Origin: Oculina patagonica | Taxonomy: Eukaryota | Length of the DNA: 64,000 nt | Assembly: GCF_052425735.1 (NCBI RefSeq) | Contig: NC_135767.1 | Location: forward strand, 3,906,001-3,970,000 | Direction: 5' to 3' | In this document: in pieces, positions 5,052 to 24,493 of the stretch | Layout of the letters: the number at the start of each line of letters is the position of its first letter | How positions within the stretch are numbered: the stretch's first letter is position 1 | Translations under genes and position numbers: made by a program | Notes under the pieces: generated by a model | The model's input: only the letters and a program-made list of their open reading frames with translations | The model's database searches: none | What the model was told of the DNA's origin: nothing

Positions 5052-7115
5052 TCAGCGAACAAGTTTAAATCCATGACCAGTGTCGTAGACTGCTGGAGGG
5101 AACCAACGCATCTTCAGTCGACGGCAGCCATGTGTAAACCAGTCAAAGATACTAAGCACATTTGTGTTGCATGGCAAATGAGTGAAAATCTTTGTAATTG
5201 GTTTAATAAACCTTGGAAAGTTTTGTTCCACATGCTGGGCAATGTCCTCCACTGTTGGCTCATGAAACTTGAAACAACACCATTCTCTTGAAACGCCATA
5301 AACTGGCTTGACTTTCATGCTGTTCTTGTCCCAGTAATTTTCAGGTTTACCCGTTACTGCAGTAGTGTTGAAATCATCCCATAGTTTGGTAAGCTCGCCT
5401 AATGGAAATGTATTTCCCAACTCTGCGTCAAATGTGGCTGTCAATTTTCCAGTTTGGATTGCTATAAAGTCATTTTCAACTTTCCAAATATTGTCTACCC
5501 ATTTATCTGAATGAGCAGTGTCTAGAAACAGCAAAAGTCTTGCCCCTGTTCCTGCGTTCTTGTTTCTCCACCATTTTAATATGCTTTCAAATGCAAGTGT
5601 TTTATCTTCTGTAAGAGCCCAGTCTCCATTACTTATCACATGGCCACTGTAGTAAAGAATGTATGTGTCATAGTGCAAACCTGGAAGAACACGCTGCTCA
5701 AAAAATGAGGTGATTTTCTTTTCAATGTAATCAGCAGAAATACCACTTGATGAAAAATCTGTACCAAAGTTATGAATCATGTGACTGGAGAAAAATCTTG
5801 AAACAATACTTATTAGCTCCATTGCTTTAGTGTTGACGGCTTGGAATGCATTCTCTGCAAGAATGACGACATCACCTGTCGGACTGTACTTGTGAGCAGG
5901 TGCGACCACAGCATACCCAATAGCTGTTCCTCCAACAGATTTTCCAAGCTTTGCAAGGATGTCATACATGACTAGTTCGACAGGAAGAATGGTTAAGAGC
6001 ATGCCGATAAATGCTGGATTGGTTTCTTGCCATGCTGAAGCTATAACAAGCAATGTCGACAGCAGTGTGTAGAGCATGACTATCTGCGACACCAGACAGA
6101 AGTGACGGAGCCCTTTTGACGCCATAACTTCTGACATACTGTTGTCACTTAACTCTCCTCTTGCATTCAAAACATTGGAACATTCTTCTAGTTTTCCAAC
6201 AAATCCCCAGCACGTCACAATGAACATAAAATGAAACCACACCCACGGTATAGACAAAAAAACGAATATAGGTAATCTGTAGACTGGCAAGTCAGGGTCT
6301 TTGACAAGTTGAATACTAAATGCATAGAATAGTGCTTCCAGAACTAACACTACAAGGATTTGCAATCTGTGAATGCATCTCCCCTGGAAAATAAACTTTT
6401 TCCATGTTTCCAAAAGCGATAACCTAGAAAAGTAAATGTCGACCAATGATTCGAAGGAAAGGTGGACGGTGAATGCTGATAAAATGTATGGGTTGTAGTT
6501 GACGTCACTGGCTGGAAAGAAATATACACTTCCTAAAAAGCACAGGCAAATGGCGCTTAGAAGAGAAATGCTTGATTTCATGTGAAATGCCATCAAGTGA
6601 ATTGTCACTGCAACAATTATTGTTAGCATGCTACCAAAGTGCATAGTTCCTGTTGTTCCAGAGAGAAATCCCAGCAGAAACAAGCATTCTTCAGTTGTAA
6701 GAAATTTGGATTCATACGCTGGCGAGGAACATATTCTTTTAGACAAAACCTTGAAACAGTGCACACCAGTACTGGCCATGATAAGGATATCAGTCACATC
6801 TAAATCATGCAAGGAATCGATCAAATGGTCGAATGCGATCTCCGTGAACGACAGCACGCTAAAAAGAACACCCATCCAAAGATAGCTGAATCCGCGTCCA
6901 AAATCTCGGTACCCGTACAGATAGGTCGCTAATGAAATCAACACAGCAATGGCTACCGCGATTGCAAGGAAATGAATGCTTCCATCTGTTGTATGATGCA
7001 GCCAGCGCTCTCTGATACCATTTGCGGCTCCGGCGAAGAAAAGAAGGGAGCAAAGGGCAGATAAATACTGAGAGAGCTTGCTTGAAACTTTGGGCAGCAT
7101 GTTGAATATTGCCAT
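5052..7115 (-). CDS. TMEM168: Transmembrane protein 168, single coding exon
   Basis: 687-aa multipass ORF from the ATG at 7115; family motifs MASKGLRHFCLVS, GGTAIGYAVV, DTYILYYSGH, WWRNKN, VYGVS and C-terminal DTGHGFKLV. Confidence 0.95.
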   Translation of the reverse strand: MAIFNMLPKVSSKLSQYLSALCSLLFFAGAANGIRERWLHHTTDGSIHFLAIAVAIAVLISLATYLYGYRDFGRGFSYLWMGVLFSVLSFTEIAFDHLIDSLHDLDVTDILIMASTGVHCFKVLSKRICSSPAYESKFLTTEECLFLLGFLSGTTGTMHFGSMLTIIVAVTIHLMAFHMKSSISLLSAICLCFLGSVYFFPASDVNYNPYILSAFTVHLSFESLVDIYFSRLSLLETWKKFIFQGRCIHRLQILVVLVLEALFYAFSIQLVKDPDLPVYRLPIFVFLSIPWVWFHFMFIVTCWGFVGKLEECSNVLNARGELSDNSMSEVMASKGLRHFCLVSQIVMLYTLLSTLLVIASAWQETNPAFIGMLLTILPVELVMYDILAKLGKSVGGTAIGYAVVAPAHKYSPTGDVVILAENAFQAVNTKAMELISIVSRFFSSHMIHNFGTDFSSSGISADYIEKKITSFFEQRVLPGLHYDTYILYYSGHVISNGDWALTEDKTLAFESILKWWRNKNAGTGARLLLFLDTAHSDKWVDNIWKVENDFIAIQTGKLTATFDAELGNTFPLGELTKLWDDFNTTAVTGKPENYWDKNSMKVKPVYGVSREWCCFKFHEPTVEDIAQHVEQNFPRFIKPITKIFTHLPCNTNVLSIFDWFTHGCRRLKMRWFPPAVYDTGHGFKLVR

Positions 7116-11283: not shown

Positions 11284-12333
11284 TTACGGTATATGGGAGA
11301 ATTTTATTGTTAAAAGTAAAGTTCTCGATAGCAAAATTGATGTCTGACAAAGGTGAAGCTAGAGTTCTGGATAGAGAAGTTTTTAGTCGAGTCTCGTTAT
11401 TCGGAATTGCCTTGGGTTTGCTTTACTAAGCTATGCGATTGGTATAAGCGTCACCTATCTACTCAACCAAACAGATGCAAAACCAAAACAAGAATTTGCT
11501 TCTTGCTTTTTTGGTTCATTGTGTTGTTTACGGTGATTTCCCATTGTAATTGCATGTGTTAGTTTTAGGACACTAAAATGAACTCCACAGTTCAGTCCGT
11601 TACAGTTGACAGTTTTGCACATGAAGGGCAAAGTTACTCAATGCCATTGGCTTTTTCGTTAATGTTCGTCCAGGGTAAGAGAACTCCAAAGATTCCCGTT
11701 AACTTCGACTATAACATTTTGATAGATCTGTGAATATTCTAAGTAGATAAGAATAGACTCCACTTGTTTCATGCTTTTGCACTCGAGGAGAAAAGTCGAC
11801 CAAACAAGAAACAAATCGCTGAATTTGGGTTACACATTGGAAAGCCACAAGGCAGGAAATGGCTACTGTAGTTGTGCCATGCCATTGTGCACGATGTTGC
11901 AGACAGGGGGCACATGAATGTTGCGAAAGAACGAGATTTCACTTCTGAAACTTTTCGCACTACAATTTTAGAGGTGGATGCACATGAGTTTTATCTATTG
12001 TGCGCAGTGTTGCACTGGTCAGGGCCATAACTGCATGTGAAGAGATAGTAAAACACTAACTTCGTTCTGCATGTGAAGAGATAGTAAAACAAATAATATG
12101 CGTAGTAAATAATACTTTATTTATTGAATATCCAGCATACAAAAGGTTTTTATACAGCAATAGGAAAATAAGTTTGATTTAATATTTAAAATTAAGAACG
12201 CATTTGTCTTATAGTCTGTGTTCTGATTAAAATGTTTAGAATTTCGTTTAAGTAAGAAATGTTTCCATCCAGCAGAAATTGATAAAAAAAAAGTCAGGGA
12301 TTAATACATTCAGTGGAGATTGGAATTATAAGG

Positions 12334-15300
12334 TCAGTTCAGAATTCGGTTAGGTTTGTAGACCAGTACAAACGTAATAACAGCGAGGAAAATAAGGTGA
12401 TTTTGAAGACGAATCCGGTCGCTTTTATTGTAATACGGCTCGTGTTCATGATGTTGATCTCGTTTCATTCGCCGTTTAGTAATTATTGACATGGCCCTTG
12501 GTAAACCAATCCTTTGCCCGCGTTCTTTGATGACAGCGGCGGCAAGCAGTGCTTTGGCGGGCTCCAGGTCACTTTTGGCGGGAGAATTGATGAACGCGAC
12601 AGTTTTCGCCACCACCTGCTCGCACGCGTCCTTATCCTGGAACGTGATTGGTTTATACACCACTGAAACGTCGTGTGTGTCCACAAGATCTACGGTCAGT
12701 TGACATTTTTCCAGGCCGCCAAACTGGTTAGACAGGTTTTTCAGTTCGGAGAAGATGACATCGCTTCGGCTGAGGTCTTGGGGTGGTTGGATTTTGTCGT
12801 TCAAGCATATCATATCTCTTGCTGCAGTGTCCAGTCGAATGCTTACAGCCGTACCTGAAATAATAACACGTGTTGAAATAAAAAGAAAACTAGCACGGCA
12901 GCGCACGTAATTAAGATCTGCGTTAGATTTTTCCACCTCTTTGTATGGCAGTGTAGTATTATAATGCAGAATGGATTCTGCGAACGCACTAACTGGTTAA
13001 AATAACATCTACAATGTGGTTTATAAAGCACTGGATTTTGCGTGCGCTGACTCACTTTTCTAGTTTTCTCAAAGGGCCTGTTAAGGTTTCTTTTTTATAA
13101 TGCCGGTAGATGGCTTTGGCTTGTTGAGCTTGCCGACTATTTTTCCTATGAATTTGGTCTTATTTTGCGGAAATTGACTTCAAGTCGTGCTTAATGTTTC
13201 ATAAAGCACGCCAAAATTAAATTCTAAATCACCCAGATATTTGATTTGTGATCAACTCCTTACCACATATGGGGCAACAGCTTCCTTCAGGAATAACAGG
13301 ATTTACACAATTTACATCAGGACAGCGAGCGAGCTCAGCAACAGTCTTACAGCGAGGGTTAAAGTGTCCCACTAAGGCGCTGTTCTCCATAAAGTGGTTG
13401 TTTTTCGGATCCACTTCGTCACACTGTCCAGGGTAGTCTACGTGACTGTTGTGAAGAGAAGCGTGACAGATGCTCTGAAGCGTCACACCATCCACACCAC
13501 ACATCTGGAGAGCAAAAAATGTGTCAAGTATTTTAACAGACGTGAATTAAGAACATTTTTTGTACGTTGAAACAGTTGCTTCTCTTCGCCTCTTACGCAG
13601 TAGTCCGCGTGACCAATTGGCGTTGCTTACTTGCGTGACTTAACGATGTGACTCACATAACTGAGTAACGCGAGTCACGCAAACGCTAACGTAAAAAAGA
13701 GATGCTGCATCTTACCCTTGTGTCGTAAGTAAGACACTCTTCTTTACACGATCCGTAGTAAGCCAAGGCGACACCTTTGCCGAACATTTCGCACTTGCTC
13801 ATGTAATTGTTGTGGTCCTCGCCACACATCTGCTCTACGTGAGCCGAGCTGCAGTTTAACGTTTCCTTGGGGGAGACTGAAAAAGAGACAGCGAGTATGA
13901 GTAAGAATTTCAAAGATTGCTAATCGCCAACGGATAAGTGTCATCGAAGCCCGAAGAGGTACCGACCGTCTTTGTCCAATCAGAAAAGGACGCGAGACCC
14001 GGGACCGAAAGTTGTCGGTCACCTCAGCTTGTCACCGTGAGCTTTCGTAACACCAATTCAAAACTGGCCAATCACGACAAACTCAAATAATGAACCAATC
14101 AGAATTCTGAGCAAAGATACGCAATTGGTTCTAAAGGCGGTAAAAATGCAACCAGTGTCGGGCGCGGGAAAACATGTTCCCGGTGCTAAGAGCGGGAAAA
14201 GACGAAACCCGTGTGCCAGGCGCGGGAAAACACGCGTCAGCCTAACCTCCTCATGTGATTGGTCGAGAACACATCATTTTTGCTGTGATTGGTTAGAGTG
14301 CATTGCAAGTGTTTTACGAACCAATATGAAAGCTAAGCAAACGTAAAACAAAAGCTTACACATGATAACGGTAGTTTTATATGAAATTCTTACCACACTG
14401 ATGCTGTGAACACTCAATAATGTCTCCATTTCTAGTGGTAGCAGCAAGACACGGTCCTCTTCTATCGACGATACAAATCTCGTGTTCTGCGCATTTGACT
14501 CCAGTGCATGGGTGCTAAAATGCGAATTAAGTTTTGAAACATTTAGAAACCAATGCAAAACAAGGAACAAAACGAACATTTTAATGTGAAAATTCCACCA
14601 AATTATCATACGCCCAGTTGATCTGAAAGCGGACTACCTTATCCAATGGATACAATTTCTACATTTTTTAGGCAAACTTATACCATAAAGATTTTTTTTG
14701 TACAGTAAGCCTGTAACGTTTTCTCCTGTAAATATATAATCCACTCGAGAAACTGCTATACTGTCTTGATGTATAATTTTTCGTAAAAAGAATCAAAACA
14801 TTTTGAAATTTGGGTATAAAGTCCAGTGTTTCTCTTATACTATCTTGTTGCCCTTGGCCGGGCCTTTAGCATTGATGTAAGTTTATTAGCGTTTACTCAG
14901 TTTTGTTAATAGAGCGATTTTCACTTGAGTGTCGAAATTAAGTGAGTGGTTTAAAAAACTCGCGCTCTTTCTCAGCCAATCGGAAATGTATTTACTTTGA
15001 GTTTTGATTAGTTTACTGGATTGTCTGCGTCCCTTGTGATTGGTCAGAGTAATGGTTTTGGTTTTACGACACTCAATCGAAAAAGAATCGCAGAACAGAC
15101 CAAGAAAGAACAGACCCTTTGTGGCATTAAACTAAATCAATAAAAAGTACTCACCAAACTCTCACACTTTCCTTGTTTCACATCCTCGACACCAAATCCA
15201 CCACATTGAAAAGCATGGCACATCGATTGGTACGTTTTCCAGTTTGGTCCACATACAGGGGACACAGGCTCACTATCGCATTCCATGCACCAGTCCTTGC

Positions 15301-18300
15301 CTCTGACGACCCCCTCATTTAGAATGGACATCAATGCGTTTTCCAAAGTGCTGTTGCCAACGGCACCCGTTCGGTAATTGGTGTAGTTGTAATTTGAGGA
15401 GGGGCATCGAACACGAGTACACAGCAACTCCCCTGGAAGTGTAGAGTATTTTTTGAAACTTAATTAATTTGTAAGAAGAAAGTTTAAATCGAGTAACGGG
15501 AGAATACGAGAAGGTAGGGGATGGGTGGAGGGCGGTTTTTGTCCTATCCCCTCCAGAGCGCATCTGCGTGAGATTCGGGCCGAAAACTCCACACTGATGA
15601 CGTATCACAAAAGAAAGTCGTGTAGTGTATGATTGGTTCTTAATTGCGCGCGAAAAATCTGGAATATTGCTTTTCGAGTCTCATCAAAGATTTCTCTCGC
15701 ACGTACGGAGCAGAAAAGTGTGTGCGTTAGAAGTCCTTTGTTTTTCGCAGGCAGCATGCCGTATACTTAGTTAATGATTGCATTGAGACCTATGTAGCTC
15801 TCGCAAGACTCCTAGACCTGTAGCAACGGATATTTGACTTCAGTCGAGAGAATTAGGAAACAATTCTCTAACAGTGCCCGGCCAATGACTGGTAAATGTC
15901 TTTCTGATCTTTCCCATCTAAACTTTACATCTCTTACCATTACGACAAACGCAGTTGTTACATCCATCAAAATGTCTTGCGCCATCTGCCAATTCTCCCT
16001 TCGCCATTGGACACGGCCTAGCAAGTTGCTGGTCACAAAGTTCAGGCTTTGCATCACAGATAAGTTCACCTATTTTACACTGGCACACGCGGCATTCGGC
16101 TCTGATGTACACTATGGTTTGGTCTGTTATCTTCTCAGCGAGGGCTGGGTGAGTACAGTGAGTCGTGGGTCCTAAGAGAAAAATAAAATAATAGTTTCAA
16201 CAAGGGAACCATCTGCTAGATAACTTTATATTCTTCTTGTTAGTAAGAAGGCCCGGGCACACATTGCAAGATTGTGCGCAGTCTGAATTGCACCAACTCC
16301 TTAACTCCTTAACCCGAAATATGCAATAATTTGGCACTAAGCCGTTAGGGTACTACCTCCTTCTATCATCATCATCGAGGTTATCTTTTAAACATCAGAA
16401 CTTCCGTGCCGCATCAGAAACGCCGCGCGAAATGTTGTAGCATGTGACCGCGCCGAATAAATATGTTACGCGAAATATTTTAGCCTTCAAAACAACCATA
16501 GGCGTACGGGCCGGGGGGGCAGGGGGGCTGCAGCCCCCCCCAAGTTTATAATTATAATTATAATTATAATTATATAGAGAGAGGAAACCAGCGAACCTAA
16601 AACCCACTGGAATCGCTTCAAAACGCCCCCAAACGGCATAGAAACACAAGATTTCTATAGAAGAGGATAGGTAAGTCGATTTTATCGGATATTTTCCCTT
16701 TATTTTGAATTATTTTTTACGATCGTTATATTCCCATACAAACCCTTATAATGATAGGAAACCAGCGAACCTAAAACCCACTGAAATGGCTTCAAAACGC
16801 CCCCAAACGGCATAGAAACACAACATTTGTATAGAAGAGGATAGGTAAGTCGATTTTATCGGATATTTTCCCTTTATTTTGAATTATTTTTTTACGATCG
16901 TTATATTCCCATACAAACCCTTATAATAACGTTATTACGCAATGTCATATGTGGTCTATATGTTGACGGCTCCTTTAGGAGCTTGGGCTACCTGTGGTTT
17001 TTCGATCGATGAGCGCGCGGTGAGAACGGCGAGAGAAATGGACGCCAGCGGAAAACGGAAGAAGCCCCCCTCCCCCCGCGTGCTTGCTCGCTCGCTTCGT
17101 TTGCGTTTTCGCGTTGAAAAATCGAGAGGCTGTGGACAGTCTAGTACTGGATAGGTCAATTACCTTGCAGGATTTATTTTGAAAGTTCGCTTCTGGCTTG
17201 GAGAATTTGGCGATGGAGGAAAAAACATCGATATTATTCGAAGAACACAGGTATGGAATGCAACAAAATAAAAAATAATTAAATATAACCAAAAAATGCG
17301 CCCACCCGCTCTCCTTTTTTTTTTTTATAGAAATCCGGACTAGAAACATTTGTTTTTTTACTTGGCCTAAATTATTACTTGCCATCGCACCTAGTCAACA
17401 ATGACATGGATCGTATTGTTGATATCTTCGGCCGTCGAAATGGTAGAGCCAGCAATTTCTTAATTAACGTGTTTTATGAGCTCATATGATAGATTCTTAT
17501 GTAAGAATTTTTCACTTCATATGTAGCCCTGTGTTAGTGCACCGAATGACCCTCGTTTCTTCTCGACTGTTTCATAAAAATTTGGGCAACTTGCGAGAAT
17601 TTTTTGGGCAACTGTCTCACCGCCCCCCCTGGCAAAAAATTGCCCGTACGCCTATGAAAACAACCGTTCCCGCATTTTGGGCGCGGGAAAATTGAGGCGA
17701 TACAAAAAGAATAAGAGTGGTGGGAGGGAGAGAGGAGAGAAGGTAAACCCGTATTTTCCCCTTCCCTCCCGCCCCCCTCCCACTTATCCTATTTTTTTGC
17801 ACTCGCCCCAATTTTCGCCTGGCCAAAATGAGGAAACCTCTTCATGATCAGTTGTACGGGAACGCCTGCTACGGAGAATAGCAGCGTTTCAGTGTATGTG
17901 TCCGGGCTTCAATCGCATTGCTAAAAAACAGACGAACCCATAACCCATCCAAGAACGATTTGAAAGAGTTTCACTCTGGCATAACCTCGGAAGACAAAAC
18001 TACTGAATGACACCAATCATGCCACAAACCTGATGGTAAGGGTTCCAAGGGATCACTCGTGTTTATGAACTGCAGTAGATGTCTAGAATTGCCTCTTCTG
18101 AATTCCTGAATCTTCTCAGCTTTTCCATCTTCACTCTGTGACCGCTTGTCAATCTTTCTATTTCCTGGATTGATATTCTCGCCATGGTCCTTTCCCTCCA
18201 CAGCGTCCCGCATCTCCACAGCAAACATCCTCTGTTTCGGCTCATCGCTTTCATCAATGTAAAAGTCCTCCACGTTTTTCAAACCATTTTCTGATCCTGT

Positions 18301-21300
18301 TTGCGGTTCCACATCTCTAATCTTCTGGTCATTTGGGGCTTTATGAGATAGAGGTCTAGCTTTCTTCTTTTTGGCGGTCGTATCTTTGGTTGAGACATCG
18401 GTTTTCTTTTGGTGCGATAGATCAACTTCTGCGTGAACTTTAAGCTTTTGAGACTGATGTGACTCTTGATTGCCAACTGAAGAACTCTTCTTTTTACCTG
18501 AGGAGAACTTTTGGATTTTTTCTCTGATGACGTTTTTCTTCGGGAACTTGTTTTTGTTACCGAGTTTGTTTTTCTTCCTGGCGATTTTCTTTTGCGAGCC
18601 TGGACCTTCTTTCTTTTTTCCTGAGATCTTTTCTTTACCTTTTCCCTTGTCGTCTTTGCTGGCTTTTTCTGTTTTAGAATCTGAATCTCTACCGTTGTCC
18701 TCTTCGTTGTTTTCTTGGTCTCTTACTGAGAGGTCTTCTCTCCCGGATAAATCCGTTTCATCTTCTTCATCTTCAGATATCAAGCTCCCTTCATTCTCCT
18801 CCCATTCATTCTCTCCTTCAGACTTATGCAAATCACGCCGTTCGTAAATACTGTTTAGACCTTCTTCTCCGGATTGTTCATCTTCATATTCCTCGTCTTC
18901 GTCTTCATCTTCTCCCGCGATCTCCTGTTCGGTTCTGCCCACCACCACGTCACTATCACGTGGATACTTCACGTGCTTCGCTCTGTGGTGCACGTGCAAA
19001 GTTTTGATGTGCTCGTGATCGTAATCTCGCTCGCCTGAGAGTGATTCGTCATCGTTTTCTTCAGGATCTTCTTCTTCATCCGTGATGTAACCAAACTCGC
19101 CATTTTTCTCTCCGTGAGAATGGAGATGCATTTTAAAGTGTTCCCATGGAGTTTTCGCATCTTCGTCGTCAATTGGGGAACGGCTGTTAAAATCGCGCGT
19201 CTCTTTGCCATGAACGTGAAGCTCTTCAATGTCACTGTCCTCTCCAGAGAATTCAACATAACCATCTTCGTCCTCAGGGTCAGTTTCCTTTCTTTCTTTT
19301 AGCTTTTTCTCTCCTTGGTGGTCGCTTTTGTGGATGTGATAATGAAGGTCTCTAACGTCAATATGGCTCCCATCGCCCGAATAACCATCTTTCTCTTCCT
19401 CGTCATCACGCACGTGCCTGTCCGATACCTCAACATGAATCTCTCCATCTTTTTCAGGATTACCCTCGTCTTCAATGCTACTTTCGTCATGTTTCTTGTT
19501 TTCCTGGCCTGGATCCTCAGCATGATGAATAACCGGTTTTTCCTGTAGCTGACGTTCGTGAAGGTGGTGATGTTGCGCATGTTCAAATGCGGCGGCTACG
19601 ACATTTTTTAGCTTTGTTCCCTCGATCTGTTGTGCTGTCTGTCTTGACATCCCCTCCATAAGGTCGACATCTATATCACTATCTGATTTTAAAAAAAAGT
19701 TGGAACTGTCAGCCACAGCAATAAATTTTTCGCGTGATTAGTTCTCCTTTCGTTCGAGAATGGCGACTAAAATTTGGCCCGAAAAATTCCATAGTGATGA
19801 CGTAGCTCTACAGAGATCCGTGCAGTCTCTCTGATTGGTTGTTACTTACGCGCGAAAATTCAGAAATGACCAACAACCAATCAGAGAATGAAAAGATTTG
19901 GCCAAAATTCCTGGTAGTTGTTTTCAGCGTTGCGAAGTCATCGATATTGACGCTTAGAGCGGTTTTCACTTGAGTGTCGAAAGTAATTCGCGTTTGCATT
20001 GGTTTTGCATTACTATGCTCAGTGATTGGTGTAATACTCTCGCGCCAATTTCTCAGCCAATCAGAAGTAAAACCAAAATCAATCGTGACTCGCTTGCGCA
20101 CGTTTTTCCGCGCTTCGTGCCGGCTATATGTATTTGATTCGAGTTTTGATTGGTTTACTAGATTGTCTGTGTTCTTTGTGATTGGCTGGAGTGATTACTT
20201 TGGTTTTGGTTTTACGACACTCAATTGAAAACTGCTCTATTCAGGAAATTGTATTCAAAAATTGCTAGACAATGCCGCTATGCATGTTGGGTAAACTTGG
20301 GTCCCTCGTTTGGACACACATGGTGGTCACATGAGCATACAACAAATAAAGTATATCTGCTATAAAGTCCTATAAAAAAATTCAAATAAGAGTTATGGAT
20401 GATCATATTAATCTAAATATCGATTTTTTTTTTTGCGTTTTTACCATTATAAATAATGGTAACAGGACTGAGTGGAGCCCAATTAGTTAAACATGGATAT
20501 AATTGAACGCGAAAATATTGAAATATTGTAACAAAATATTGTATTCACTCACAACCTTGGACTAGGTATTTGTGATAACGCCCTCATTTTAAATTGCAGG
20601 TAGTTCAAAACGATCCGAAACAGAAACTGATTTTTCACGAGGCTGTTTGTTTAGAGATGAATATGTTTATAGACGAAACCATTTGCCAGAGTTGCATTCT
20701 GACCTTATCAAAGACAAAACATTTGGCGGCGAAAGCGAAAAGCGTTGTTACCGAACCATCTATTTGCTGAGGGTGCATAACGGTGGAATTTCGGTACGAG
20801 GCTGTTTGATATTGGATAAGTTGTTCGAAACCCAATGCACCAACGCTTAGATGTTCAGTGAGATTTGGCTTCAAGACTATGAACAGCTATAAAACTGAAT
20901 ATTTAAATAATTTTAAAATAGCAGCTTTATATAATAAAGTATTCTCTTATCTAACACATCTCTTCTATACTATAAAGTAGGCTTGTGTATCAACACACTA
21001 AGCTTATAGTGGAGTGTAACTGTGCTTTCTGCTCAGATCATGCCATAGTTAGTAGTACTACTAACTATATACAGATGAAAGTTTCTTTACGAAGCTGGAT
21101 CTTTATTTAAGAGTAATAATAGGAATTGTTTCATCTAAAATTGTTTTGTTTTTGAGTCGTTTATCGCTAACGACAAATGCATTCAACTCTCAGAAAATGT
21201 ACCTGATCTTTGTTTATTACCCTTCCGCCATTAATGTTTGAAACGATTGTGTAAATTCACTTTCTGGTTCTAGTTGTTTCTTACATCTAACAGTCTCTAT

Positions 21301-21770
21301 AGATAAGCATATACCACAAAATCGGTTGAGTTGGCTGAAAAAACAAGGAGATAGAGGTCAGAAACCTTCAAAATCCAAACAAGACAAAACTTCGTCTTAG
21401 ATAACTTAAGCTTAATAGTAGTTTAAGATTTCACAATTTCAATGAAAATTATTTTTGCAGACCGTTGGTTTCGGTTCCGAAAGATGTAACGAGAATTTTG
21501 AAACTGACAAGACAGTAAGTTCCTAAAGGCAGTGCATTACTCAGAAATAGTCACGAATTTAAAACACAAAAGATCTAATTAGCAAAAAACCTTTTAAAGC
21601 TGAAGCGAATGGTTTTCTTCGATCTGAAATTAGTTAGATTTCACAACAGCGTGCGAGTTTACACTGGTTTACTTACCTCGAGTTCCCCGACTTCTTTTAC
21701 TATCAATTCGGCAAGGATTTAAAAGAACCACAATAACAAGAAGCGTCGTGAGTTGCCGTCTATGCAGCAT
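12334..21770 (-). CDS. RECK-like secreted/GPI-type Kazal-motif protein with a long acidic His-rich N-terminal region (about 1100 aa)
   Basis: Exons (minus) 21770-21677 (signal peptide MLHRRQLTTLLVIVVLLNPCRIDS), 19682-18030, 16171-15938, 15432-15155, 14514-14394, 13876-13716, 13504-13264, 12854-12334; all GT-AG, phases 1,1,1,0,1,0,1; total 3303 nt. Exons 3-8 follow the RECK C-terminal Cys pattern (CNNCVC..G.L.CT...C, PVCGPNWKTYQSMC, CSQHQC, LAYYGSC, VDYPGQC, IPEGSCCPICG) and end in a hydrophobic tail. Confidence 0.85.
16497..17656. mobile_element. Non-autonomous hAT-type element in intron 2 of the RECK-like gene
   Basis: TIRs CATAGGCGTACGGGC / GCCCGTACGCCTATG; perfect 8-bp TSD AAAACAAC (16489-16496, 17657-17664). 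Confidence 0.9.
16582..16927. repeat. Near-perfect tandem duplication, about 172 bp x2, inside the hAT element
   Basis: AGGAAACCAGCGAACCTAAAACCCACTG...CCCATACAAACCCTTATAAT occurs twice. Confidence 0.95.
19955..20239. mobile_element. Dispersed MITE-like repeat; partial copies near 14909-15080 and 11400-11570
   Basis: TIRs TAGAGCGGTTTTCACTTGAGTGTCG / CGACACTCAATTGAAAACTGCTCTA; CCAATC/GATTGG-rich interior. Confidence 0.8.
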
Positions 21771-24193
21771 TTTGTGGATAAATGCTAAGAACACAAAAAA
21801 ACTAAGGCAAAAATAACATCGTTGGATTGTATTCTGGCAGTGAAATCGACATTGTTGTCCGTTTACTTGACTAACGCCAGCGTGACGTCACACGCTAGTA
21901 GATTCCCGCCAGTTACGCGAGCGCTTTTCATTAGGGAGGGGTGGGTAAGGACGGCTAAAAATCAACGTTTTGAATCTGCTGATTACTTTTTAAGGCGGCA
22001 CGTTAAAAATAAAACAAGTCCTGAAAAACGCCTTTTCATTAATTTTTTTAATGTACATGATTTAAAATCTTGACTACGGTGAATTTGATTCACAAACCTC
22101 AGATAAAGTTTATAGCGCGCGCATCATCCGTTTTGTTTGCATACGAACGCCAATTCTGTTCAAAGACCTTGATGAAAGCAGGATTACACTGGATTGGCTG
22201 TAAGGGTGTAAATAAATTATCGCAAGAGCAATAGGAATTCTGGGCAATAGGTCGGAAAAATCTCTTAAACAAAGGCCTGAAGCAGAATTCTGGAATTAGT
22301 CAGTAATTAGTAATTTTTAAAAATTCTGGAATTATTTATAACCGTTAAATACGAAGTTATATTTAGAATTTCGTGTTTCTGTCAGTTGAATTTGCTATAT
22401 ATCAATCTTTGATTAAAGGTATCCAAACTATGCGAAAATCTAATATATTCAAAGCAAAATACTAATTTTAAATTCTTGAGATCTTTTAATCAAGGAAAGC
22501 AGACAACTGACTTGTTTTAATTTGCTGACAGTGTAAAATTTTTTACAGAAAGTGAGGAGACATTCTACAACAATTTCAGACATGCGTAATAACAAACCAC
22601 GATGCAAAGACAAAAAGTGCAGTTTGAAGTTTATCGCGCAGGATGTGAAAAGCACTTCTTAGGTCCAAATAAAAACATGAAATTTTGCCTTTGTGTTACA
22701 CGTTCTCCATAACACGTATTATCGTTTGATTATTATTTCATGTTGTTTCGCAGAGGACGACTAAGAAATGTAGCAAGATGTTTGATGCACGTACAGAGCT
22801 ATTTTACTGCTCATTATTAAACGTTTTACAAGAGCTATCTCGCGATATTTTAAGTCATTTTTCTGATATACAAAATTACTTTCAAATTGATGGAAACCTT
22901 ACAAATAATAGATTTCTAACGCAGAAAAACTCCAAAGAAAAATTTTTTTTAAATAACCAAAAATACCAAAAATACACAAGGATTAAGACGGATTTTAAAA
23001 AAACAAACTTGAAAACACTAGTCAATTTTTCAAGATCTTTAAAGTGCCTTTTGCGTGGCCACTGCTGCAGGTATTGCTTGCTTAACTACCCTAAAATCTA
23101 TATGCTTTGTGTGTTATGGACGACGGGGTTTTGAAGTTCTGTTTTTATTACCACATTAAATTTGCAGGTAGTTCAAGTAGTTCTTAAAGTGGCACCAGTT
23201 ATTGTTAACATTAAGAACCTCAGCCGGAACGTAGCTACAGAATTAATCCTGCGTTACTTGAATTAAAACAAATTTTCAATCAGGTTTTCTGAAAATGTTC
23301 ATTCATCATATCTCTCGGACAGAAGTAAAGCTGGACGCTTGAAAACAACAAATCGACAGCATCAAAACTGTTTGTTCATTAAAATTTTATTTCTACCCGC
23401 AAAACCAAGTAAAACACGACTATCTTTTCTGAAAATTACCAGAAATTGTGCACGCCTTTCCTTTTCTAAATTTCCTCCCATTCTTTTATTTAATAATTAC
23501 AATTACACCATAAAAAATAAGACAAAAAATCGGTCACTTCTAGATGTATTAACAAAATGTAAAAATGTTTGGGATAGCAGGTATACATTACAACTTGAAA
23601 AGCAATATGTCTGCTTCGTAATATAAAAGGAAATATTTCAACTAGTTTCTATCAGATTCTACGGGTAGTCTACACCGATACAATTTACAACGCCATTTTT
23701 TCTACTGTACAATTATTCGAATACAATCGCTATTAGTTTACAAATAAATTTGAAAAAAAGAACCCCGTATGTTTATATTCGCATCTTTAGATTAGGGTGT
23801 GGTTGATAGAAAAATCGAACTCATCAAATTTCAACATTTTCGCTCCCGGAATTCGAATATTCCTGCAAACATTGACAGAATATTTTCACAAATTAAGATT
23901 CCCTTGCCAGCTAGCACAATCCTCTTCAATTCCAGTTCAAATATATTTGGATAACGAGGAGAAGCTTGCTAAACCACGAAGCTCTCGCGTAAAAATCTCC
24001 CTTCTGCTTGCAGTGTTTTCAAATTCTATTCTACACCTCGACAGCCATAAAAATATTCAGTAACGCTGGCTTCTTATTGAAGCAAAGTTTTGGAAATGTT
24101 TCTTCATAAGGCATGTTGTTTGTTCAGTTCTTTACTCTAAGTTGATGATGAAAGTCTGCTAACAATGAATCGATGTCCGTGAGAATGTAAACG

Positions 24194-24493
24194 TTAAACT
24201 AACACACAACAGCACCCTTGTTCTTCCTCCTCAATTTTTTTCTCTTCGTCTTTCTTTTCGTCACTTTTCTTGTCATCCCCTTCGGCCGATTTTTCGGCGT
24301 CTTTTTTCTCGTCTCCCTCGCCGTCTTTCGCTGCTTCTTTATCGCCTCCGGCTCCTTCTTCGTTTGCATTCTCCTCTGCAGGTTTATCTCCACCTTCCTC
24401 CGCGGCCGGGGCAGCTTCCCCTTCTGCAGGCGGCTGTTCGCCTTCAGCCGGCGCTTCAGCCGCTGGAGGAGTCTCGCCTTCGGCGTCTGCCAT
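24194..24493 (-). CDS. Small acidic disordered protein with a C-terminal CCC-aaX lipidation signal
   Basis: 99-aa ORF, AAACATGG start context, A/E/G/P/K/D-only low complexity, ends QGCCCVLV*; TATAAA about 80 bp upstream on the minus strand. Confidence 0.8.
   Translation of the reverse strand: MADAEGETPPAAEAPAEGEQPPAEGEAAPAAEEGGDKPAEENANEEGAGGDKEAAKDGEGDEKKDAEKSAEGDDKKSDEKKDEEKKIEEEEQGCCCVLV

Follow-up and report, generated by a model that had tools for sequence, protein, structure and literature searches.

Does a coral genome hold a second gene of the RECK family, one that keeps the C-terminal half of RECK and carries something else in place of the N-terminal half, or is such a gene merely a faulty join of two neighbours? 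According to a 2026 review (PMC12842694), animals from sponges to vertebrates, among them corals and sea anemones, have one RECK gene per genome, which is kept single by strong selection and whose CC domains are unique to it; a paralogue without CC domains is unmentioned there. The question is raised by a stretch of 64,000 nucleotides from Oculina patagonica (NCBI RefSeq assembly GCF_052425735.1, contig NC_135767.1, positions 3,906,001 to 3,970,000 of the forward strand), referred to here as the window. On its minus strand a first-pass annotation had proposed a RECK chimera, in which a signal-peptide exon, a long cysteine-free exon and six exons of the RECK C-terminal type are spliced in frame and an acidic, His-rich region stands in place of the five CC domains. 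We show that the locus is one transcribed, single-copy gene of a conserved hexacorallian family derived from RECK, here called half-RECK, and that its product is a secretory-pathway protein of RECK descent that lacks the Wnt7/GPR124-binding half. The best overall explanation, which we hold with a probability of about 0.6, is that this hexacorallian protein would be anchored by glycosylphosphatidylinositol (GPI), would present a charged arm and may be shed.

One transcribed gene of RECK descent

Reading the minus strand and splicing it by script joined eight exons (21770-12334) into an in-frame coding sequence of 3303 nt (1100 aa), with GT..AG ends in every intron as spliced from the window sequence. 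Coordinates and phases came out as first proposed, including the symmetry of exon 2 (phase 1 at both ends), which is conserved in Actinostola. The exons are as follows:

21677..21770, minus strand: exon 1, starting at the ATG, with a signal-peptide-like MLHRRQ + LTTLLVIVVLL and the donor G/gtaagt in phase 1
18030..19682, minus strand: exon 2, of 1653 nt, with phase 1 on either side and no Cys among 551 aa
15938..16171, minus strand: exon 3, a Cys-rich FnI/VWC-like module that matches RECK ~556-620 (weak Pfam FnI_RECK and VWC matches; profile alignment to 8tzp_C)
15155..15432, minus strand: exon 4, the end of the FnI-like module and Kazal-like domain 1 (Kazal_2 match; aligns with RECK 637-673)
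14394..14514, minus strand: exon 5, an EGF-like module corresponding to RECK EGF2 (the PCxxxxC...C.QY.CV pattern aligns with RECK 676-712)
13716..13876, minus strand: exon 6, Kazal-like domain 2 and the start of Kazal-like domain 3 (Kazal_1 and Kazal_2 matches; RECK alignment)
13264..13504, minus strand: exon 7, Kazal-like domain 3 and a Cys-rich ...IPEGSCCPICG module of VWC/Amnionless type (aligns with RECK ...IIPPGACCPLC)
12334..12854, minus strand: exon 8, an alpha/beta (ferredoxin-like) domain of ~115 aa homologous to RECK 827-939, a flexible stalk, the tail and the stop codon

A deposited model, 'hypothetical protein ACROYT_G032880 [Oculina patagonica]' (P0013), matches the product at 100% identity, so that the deposited annotation reached the same model, which should be considered as agreement rather than as independent proof. 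For splicing, we used contigs of four public runs (X1, X2, X5 and X6) mapped on 15900-21800. The junction 18030/16171 is spliced exactly in contigs of X2, X5 and X6, with 18029-16172 skipped and GT..AG ends, one 3031-nt contig holds 575 nt from the 3' end of exon 2 together with the complete exon 3 and then continues, and the junction between 21677 and exon 2 is present in contigs of X1 and X2; across the unique intron segments, contig depth is zero. Joints with GT..AG ends have hardly any other explanation than splicing, and they provide independent support for the gene model. The contigs also gave a second joint, 16172/18034 (TA..GA), which most probably represents 18030/16171 aligned differently in diverged contigs. 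The same picture is found in Stylophora pistillata, where a 1042-aa orthologue is encoded whole, from signal peptide to tail, on at least eight contigs of 3.2-4.5 kb that contain no introns and thus represent mRNA. Both sets of contigs bear out the claim that the acidic exon and the RECK-like exons are part of one transcript.

These data bear directly on the possibility that the gene is an artefact, either two mis-joined neighbours (a RECK-like gene and one for a secreted acidic protein that terminates at 17971) or a canonical RECK gene with CC exons further upstream. The frame of exon 2 indeed stays open for 19 codons past the donor, up to a TGA at 17971, and the donor itself (CAG/gtttgt) is weak. 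Moreover, a wrong fusion does exist in GenBank, as the Stylophora protein PFX15329.1, named RECK, has 103 additional residues at its N-terminus; these resemble the acidic neighbour upstream (the counterpart of an open reading frame at 24194-24493 of the window) and, judging from this resemblance, are a mis-fusion with it. However, contigs of three runs splice exon 2 to exon 3 exactly, the intron-less Stylophora contigs encode the complete protein, a RefSeq model from Nematostella has the same layout, and matches to CC and Frizzled-like (FZ) profiles are confined to C7, another contig of the same genome, and to other contigs. The artefact is thus largely refuted, and we regard it as highly improbable.

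The RECK descent of the C-terminal half was established by profile searches and alignments to the RECK structure in PDB entry 8tzp_C. Residues 583-1100 (518 aa) of the window protein match 8tzp_C with E=1.7e-18, the profile of a 13-sequence family alignment (A1) matches it with E=1.3e-28, collinearly over RECK 556-939 and with follistatin as a distant second (E=3.8e-5), and a 518-aa model from Actinostola sp. (P0006) matches with E=1.2e-22, collinearly over RECK 557-940. The top three matches in a language-model feature search were RECK clusters. The modules follow the order found in RECK, namely FnI-like, Kazal 1, EGF-like, Kazal 2, Kazal 3, the CCPxC module and the alpha/beta domain. These results agree with the proposed RECK-derived paralogue with a RECK-type C-terminal half, a hydrophobic tail and no CC domains, and extend it by the loss of the FZ domain.

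The choice of query matters when considering these matches. Scanned exon by exon, Pfam gave sub-threshold matches only, and whole proteins and the family profile were therefore used. In this way Kazal_2 exceeded its gathering score of 22.8 bits in P0013 (29.9 bits) and in the Nematostella orthologue P0011 (36.5 bits), and Amnionless reached 33 bits against a cut-off of 30.4 over residues 899-949 of P0013. With the full 1100-aa protein as query, phmmer found no match in PDB, probably because the low-complexity half masked the signal, and with exon 8 as query against all libraries it returned ten clusters only, mostly fragments, with P0006 among them and no canonical RECK. An AlphaFold2 (AF2) model of the exon-8 domain had an overall predicted local distance difference test score (pLDDT) of 68.5, with 72-90 over residues 1-115 and disorder after them; against PDB, the model of the alpha/beta domain matched generic ferredoxin-like folds only (best E=0.006). 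A SEA domain was also considered for this region, and nothing supports it. For the entire C-terminal half, the AF2 prediction was too uncertain (pLDDT 51.5, predicted template modelling score 0.26). The protease-inhibitor-like character that the first-pass annotation gave to this half, like the metal binding that it gave to the acidic region, is putative.

The canonical gene and the age of the architecture

A canonical RECK gene is also present in the same genome, in complete form, on C7. In genome-wide profile searches, RECK-like_N, CC4_RECK, FZ_RECK and FnI_RECK lie together on C7 at 19926245-19981586, and the gene as a whole (C7:19926245-19984262, plus strand, ~58 kb) comprises RECK-like_N, CC4, FZ_RECK, EGF1, FnI, three Kazal exons and the IIPPGACCPHCG exon. 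The sequence stretch of this gene includes 1000 N. Matches to the Pfam profiles CC4_RECK and RECK-like_N across the whole genome were restricted to C7:19926245-19961731, with none in the window, and FZ_RECK matched at C7:19962985-19964416 and on other contigs, with none in C10:3906001-3970000, which is the window. No CC exon was found upstream that could be spliced to 16171, as the window holds no CC match at all. CC and FZ domains are likewise absent from four orthologous proteins (P0013, P0014, P0011 and P0049). The C7 gene is much closer to vertebrate RECK than half-RECK is, and the two genes differ in their intron positions. Half-RECK itself is single-copy in the O. patagonica genome.

The architecture is shared by other hexacorals. 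The Stylophora orthologue (XP_022806608.1, 1042 aa; cluster P0014) has the same layout and the motifs DFYI.ES, RRGNSRHLLQF and RxxR-xx-HHEHEP, and its C-terminal half is 59% identical to that of the window protein, as compared with 39% for Nematostella. In Nematostella vectensis, the RefSeq 'RECK isoform X1' (P0011, 776 aa) consists of a signal peptide, an acidic, His- and Ser-rich region of ~260 aa, the RECK half and a GPI-like tail. Signal-peptide-like N-termini of the same kind as that of the window protein are found in both species. In Actinostola sp. cb2023, an open frame of 1117 codons lies immediately upstream of a gene that is annotated in part. At the homologous start of this frame (…DID…SRQ…) there is a phase-1 acceptor, and its donor (ACA/GTAAGT), also in phase 1 and of consensus type, fits the phase-1 acceptor of the first RECK-half exon. 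This counterpart of exon 2 (L026:6403-9684, plus strand) spans 1094 codons with 19% His and consists for the most part of ~35 tandem 15-aa HHGSHHKDNDHVEKR units, together with ~52-aa PAPHSGDNEQEHDPNHHTGP... repeats. In the deposited Actinostola annotation this exon is missing, and an internal Met serves as the start of the gene.

Two further anthozoan loci, L038 and L039, have long Cys-free acidic exons upstream of Kazal exons. L039 is syntenic with the window, and its upstream open reading frame is homologous to exon 2 (E=2e-20, composition-corrected). At 5055-7100 of the window (minus strand), a seemingly intron-less open reading frame encodes a multi-pass membrane protein of ~680 aa and shares 75% identity with the one downstream of half-RECK in L039, and in both L038 and L039 a gene with a Q_salvage domain follows on the other strand; the 75%-identical reading frame and the Q_salvage neighbours indicate that synteny around half-RECK is conserved. 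As the layout is common to stony corals and sea anemones, the architecture predates their split, and half-RECK is thus an old hexacorallian RECK paralogue, neither a coral novelty nor a mis-join. This should be read with the sampling in mind, as the word-indexed database searches yielded only three full-length family members and the taxa covered are Scleractinia and Actiniaria.

Some features of the surroundings are recorded here in their own right. Intron 1 contains, at 19955..20239 and outside the coding sequence, a repeat of ~285 bp that resembles a miniature inverted-repeat transposable element (MITE), with 28-nt terminal inverted repeats (89% complementary), and similar ends are found near 14930-15080 in intron 4. 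Over this repeat the summed contig depth rises to ~77,000 in dozens of contigs, with loose ends exactly at 19954/19955 and 20239/20240; this depth and the loose ends at its boundaries point to a very abundant, transcribed repeat family. An Rfam scan of 12000-22500 gave no match. The upstream neighbour at 24194-24493 (minus strand) is an acidic open reading frame of 99 aa, rich in Ala, Glu, Lys and Pro, and ends in ...GCCCVLV, which resembles a CaaX-like prenylation box preceded by Cys and suggests a lipid-anchored acidic protein.

The charged arm, the stalk and the tail

The region encoded by exon 2 had been described as polyanionic, which is true of one part of it only. Residues 32-380 contain 32% Asp and Glu and 8% His, with an isoelectric point (pI) of 4.5, but residues 381-582 are rich in Lys (18%, pI 9.9), with a Lys-rich block at 381-480 followed by a better-conserved end. 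The region is therefore a block polyampholyte rather than a plain polyanion, and it is probably disordered. No Cys is found between the signal peptide and the RECK half of the window protein, and an atlas feature search with the N-terminal region gave no usable match. Ser-Gly dipeptides, mostly SG[D/E], occur 2-4 times as often as in shuffled sequences in all six orthologues, and would fit either glycosaminoglycan attachment sites or S-x-E sites of a Fam20C-type secretory kinase. Between corals and anemones the N-terminal regions are conserved only in composition and in a few short islands, one of which is a Tyr in an acidic context (DFY[IF]-acidic), the window form of which is:

18241..18270, minus strand: motif EDFYIDESDE (aa 503-512), present in all six orthologues

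Its variants are DFYIAES/DFYIDES, DLYIDDS, DFYFNED, DFYIDEN and DFSISED, and it may be considered a candidate tyrosine-sulfation or docking motif.

The first-pass annotation considered the protein a candidate for the skeletal matrix or the cell-surface matrix. As a skeletal organic-matrix protein, it would be secreted by calicoblasts, would bind Ca2+ or carbonate mineral with its arm and would be occluded in aragonite like the coral acid-rich proteins. The 32% Asp and Glu of the acidic block, its pI of 4.5 and its many SxE-like sites would suit this role, as would a signal peptide together with a possible shedding site, and both acidic proteins and protease inhibitors are represented, as classes, in the O. 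patagonica skeleton. However, the gene and its architecture are conserved in Nematostella and Actinostola, which do not calcify, and half of exon 2 is strongly basic in corals. Terms such as RECK, Kazal or Amnionless are absent from the O. patagonica/S. pistillata skeleton-proteome paper, from the supplements searched and from a 2026 comparative preprint, and no paper citing the Stylophora accessions was found in the literature searched. The skeletal proposal is thus weakened: we consider it decidedly unlikely as the explanation of the gene, while a skeletal-matrix role taken on by co-option in corals is possible but not favoured.

Two features of the C-terminal end are relevant for how the protein may be held at, or released from, the membrane:

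12436..12471, minus strand: R1056-M-K-R1059, then D-Q-H-H-E-H-E-P (alignments A1 and A3)
12358..12396, minus strand: LIFLAVITFVLVY (aa 1081-1093), a hydrophobic stretch preceded by an NKS sequon and a spacer of 8 aa

The stalk R-x-x-R corresponds to the minimal proprotein-convertase motif and does not vary among 13-16 sequences, and the His is nearly invariant; in 12 of 13 sequences, exactly two residues follow RxxR before HHEHEP, an NxS/T sequon and the hydrophobic tail. AF2 predicts the RxxR/His stalk to be disordered. Convertase cleavage at this site would, by hypothesis, shed the ectodomain and leave a stub with an X-X-His N-terminus. A second RxxR, RSRGTR (HRRTR in Stylophora), is found right after the signal-peptide region, at the end of exon 1 (window 21677-21700, minus strand) and at the boundary with exon 2, and could be a convertase site of the pro-peptide type. 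The tail of the window protein has a small-residue/NxS site, a spacer, a hydrophobic stretch of 13 aa and then 7 polar residues. The sequon, spacer and hydrophobic stretch correspond in layout to a predicted GPI-attachment signal, and the anemone orthologues have textbook GPI-like tails.

The same His residues raise a further alternative, in which half-RECK is mainly a shed, soluble, His-rich protein of matrix or mucus that handles metals or acts against microbes, with the RECK half as no more than a scaffold and an arm that, in the manner of histidine-rich glycoprotein and histatins, would sequester Zn, Cu or Ni. In the N-terminal regions of corals and Nematostella 6-9% of the residues are His, as compared with 19% in the Actinostola exon with its ~35 HHGSHHKDNDHVEKR units, and as HHEHEP follows RxxR at a distance of two residues in 12 of 13 sequences, a cut at this site would leave X-X-His as the new end. 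Against this, His content varies widely among species, the repeats are lineage-specific, and strong conservation is seen in the RECK half and not in the His tracts. We find this alternative unlikely, though not quite as unlikely as skeletal matrix.

Possible function and comparison with known systems

Our preferred explanation, an anchored RECK-derived protein with a charged arm, can be worded as a sequence of steps, each of which should be taken as predicted from sequence. Half-RECK would enter the secretory pathway and be GPI-anchored at the cell surface, as RECK is. Having neither CC1-CC5 nor FZ, it would be unable to act as RECK does in Wnt7/GPR124 signalling; we infer this loss of Wnt7 co-receptor function because CC1 and CC4 are absent. 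The role of the RECK C-terminal half, which in RECK is linked to the regulation of extracellular metalloproteases, is probably kept. The highly charged, disordered arm would be presented into the pericellular matrix, with SG[D/E] sites as candidates for glycosaminoglycan attachment or Fam20C-type phosphorylation and with His, Asp and Glu as candidate ligands for divalent cations. Finally, a furin-type convertase may cut at the RxxR of the disordered stalk and shed the ectodomain, leaving a short GPI-linked stub that starts with X-X-His. In its specific form, as a GPI-anchored and possibly convertase-shed glycoprotein of the pericellular matrix or of protease regulation, with a charged and modifiable arm, this assignment is tentative, and we place it somewhat below even odds.

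The explanation has some drawbacks that need to be considered. The runs that show splicing are only guessed to be RNA, and their contigs, 5-8% divergent from the window, come from relatives rather than from the same individual. Corals and anemones can hardly be aligned over the N-terminal region, which makes a sequence-specific function there doubtful. In coral tails the hydrophobic stretch is followed by 6-8 polar residues, unlike in typical GPI signals, and a short transmembrane anchor instead of GPI is possible. Nematostella keeps RxxR without HHEHEP, and a His stub can therefore not be essential in the family as a whole. Even in vertebrates, evidence for direct protease inhibition by the Kazal region of RECK is limited.

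A bolder form of the same explanation regards half-RECK as an ancient second gene of the RECK family in hexacorals, in which the Wnt7 half was swapped for a modifiable, disordered arm that bears metals or glycosaminoglycans, and in which convertase cleavage at the invariant RxxR leaves a GPI-linked mini-peptide with a Cu/Ni site of the amino-terminal Cu- and Ni-binding (ATCUN) type, formed by X-X-His and HEHEP. This would be an improbable outcome in our estimate. If true, one protein would combine a shed regulator of matrix or proteases with a membrane-tethered, metal-binding stub, and would serve as a natural experiment showing that the RECK C-terminal half is an autonomous functional module.

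The locus is of interest for several reasons. The finding that a coral genome with a complete canonical RECK has another gene of RECK origin, without CC domains, contrasts with the single-gene view. As the two halves of RECK are naturally separated, the gene offers a route to the role of the C-terminal half on its own, which is poorly understood and might be protease regulation, matrix binding or dimerisation, for example. Coral biology gains a conserved, highly charged cell-surface or matrix protein, for which skeleton, mesoglea, mucus and cell surface are candidate locations. It also serves as a warning on annotation: several genome annotations split or truncate half-RECK, and the automatic names in databases vary between 'RECK', 'hypothetical protein' and 'amnionless' (a Desmophyllum fragment). 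The gene had been called undescribed, and no paper describing a CC-less RECK architecture was found in the literature searched; nonetheless, GenBank and RefSeq already name the Stylophora and Nematostella orthologues RECK, so that the word holds for that literature only. Overall, we regard the finding as real and conserved, and as moderately surprising to RECK specialists.

When compared with known systems, half-RECK is nearest to canonical RECK, with which it is collinear over RECK ~556-939 and shares a signal peptide and a C-terminal hydrophobic tail, which may be of GPI type. It differs in lacking the five CC domains and the Frizzled-like domain, that is, the half that binds Wnt7 and GPR124, and in having instead a Cys-free, probably disordered exon of ~550 aa, and its invariant RxxR with HHEHEP lies beyond the end of the aligned RECK (939-940). 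Among the database orthologues, those of Stylophora and Nematostella are set apart by names that stem from automatic annotation only, and that of Nematostella by a shorter N-terminal region (~260 aa) and a tail without HHEHEP.

Secreted matrix proteins such as SPARC and testican (SPOCK) combine an acidic low-complexity segment with modules of follistatin/Kazal type, and glypicans are GPI-anchored. Half-RECK resembles these proteins in pairing an acidic arm with Kazal modules and in having acid-flanked Ser-Gly sites like those of proteoglycan attachment, but it has neither the EC/EF-hand domain of SPARC nor thyroglobulin or glypican domains, and its Kazal region is specifically RECK-like; the resemblance is best taken as analogy and not as membership. 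With CARPs, SAARPs and other acidic proteins of the skeletal organic matrix, half-RECK has in common that it is secreted, poor in Cys over its arm, rich in Asp and Glu and probably disordered there, whereas its folded RECK half, membrane tail and Lys-rich block, as well as its presence in anemones, distinguish it from them.

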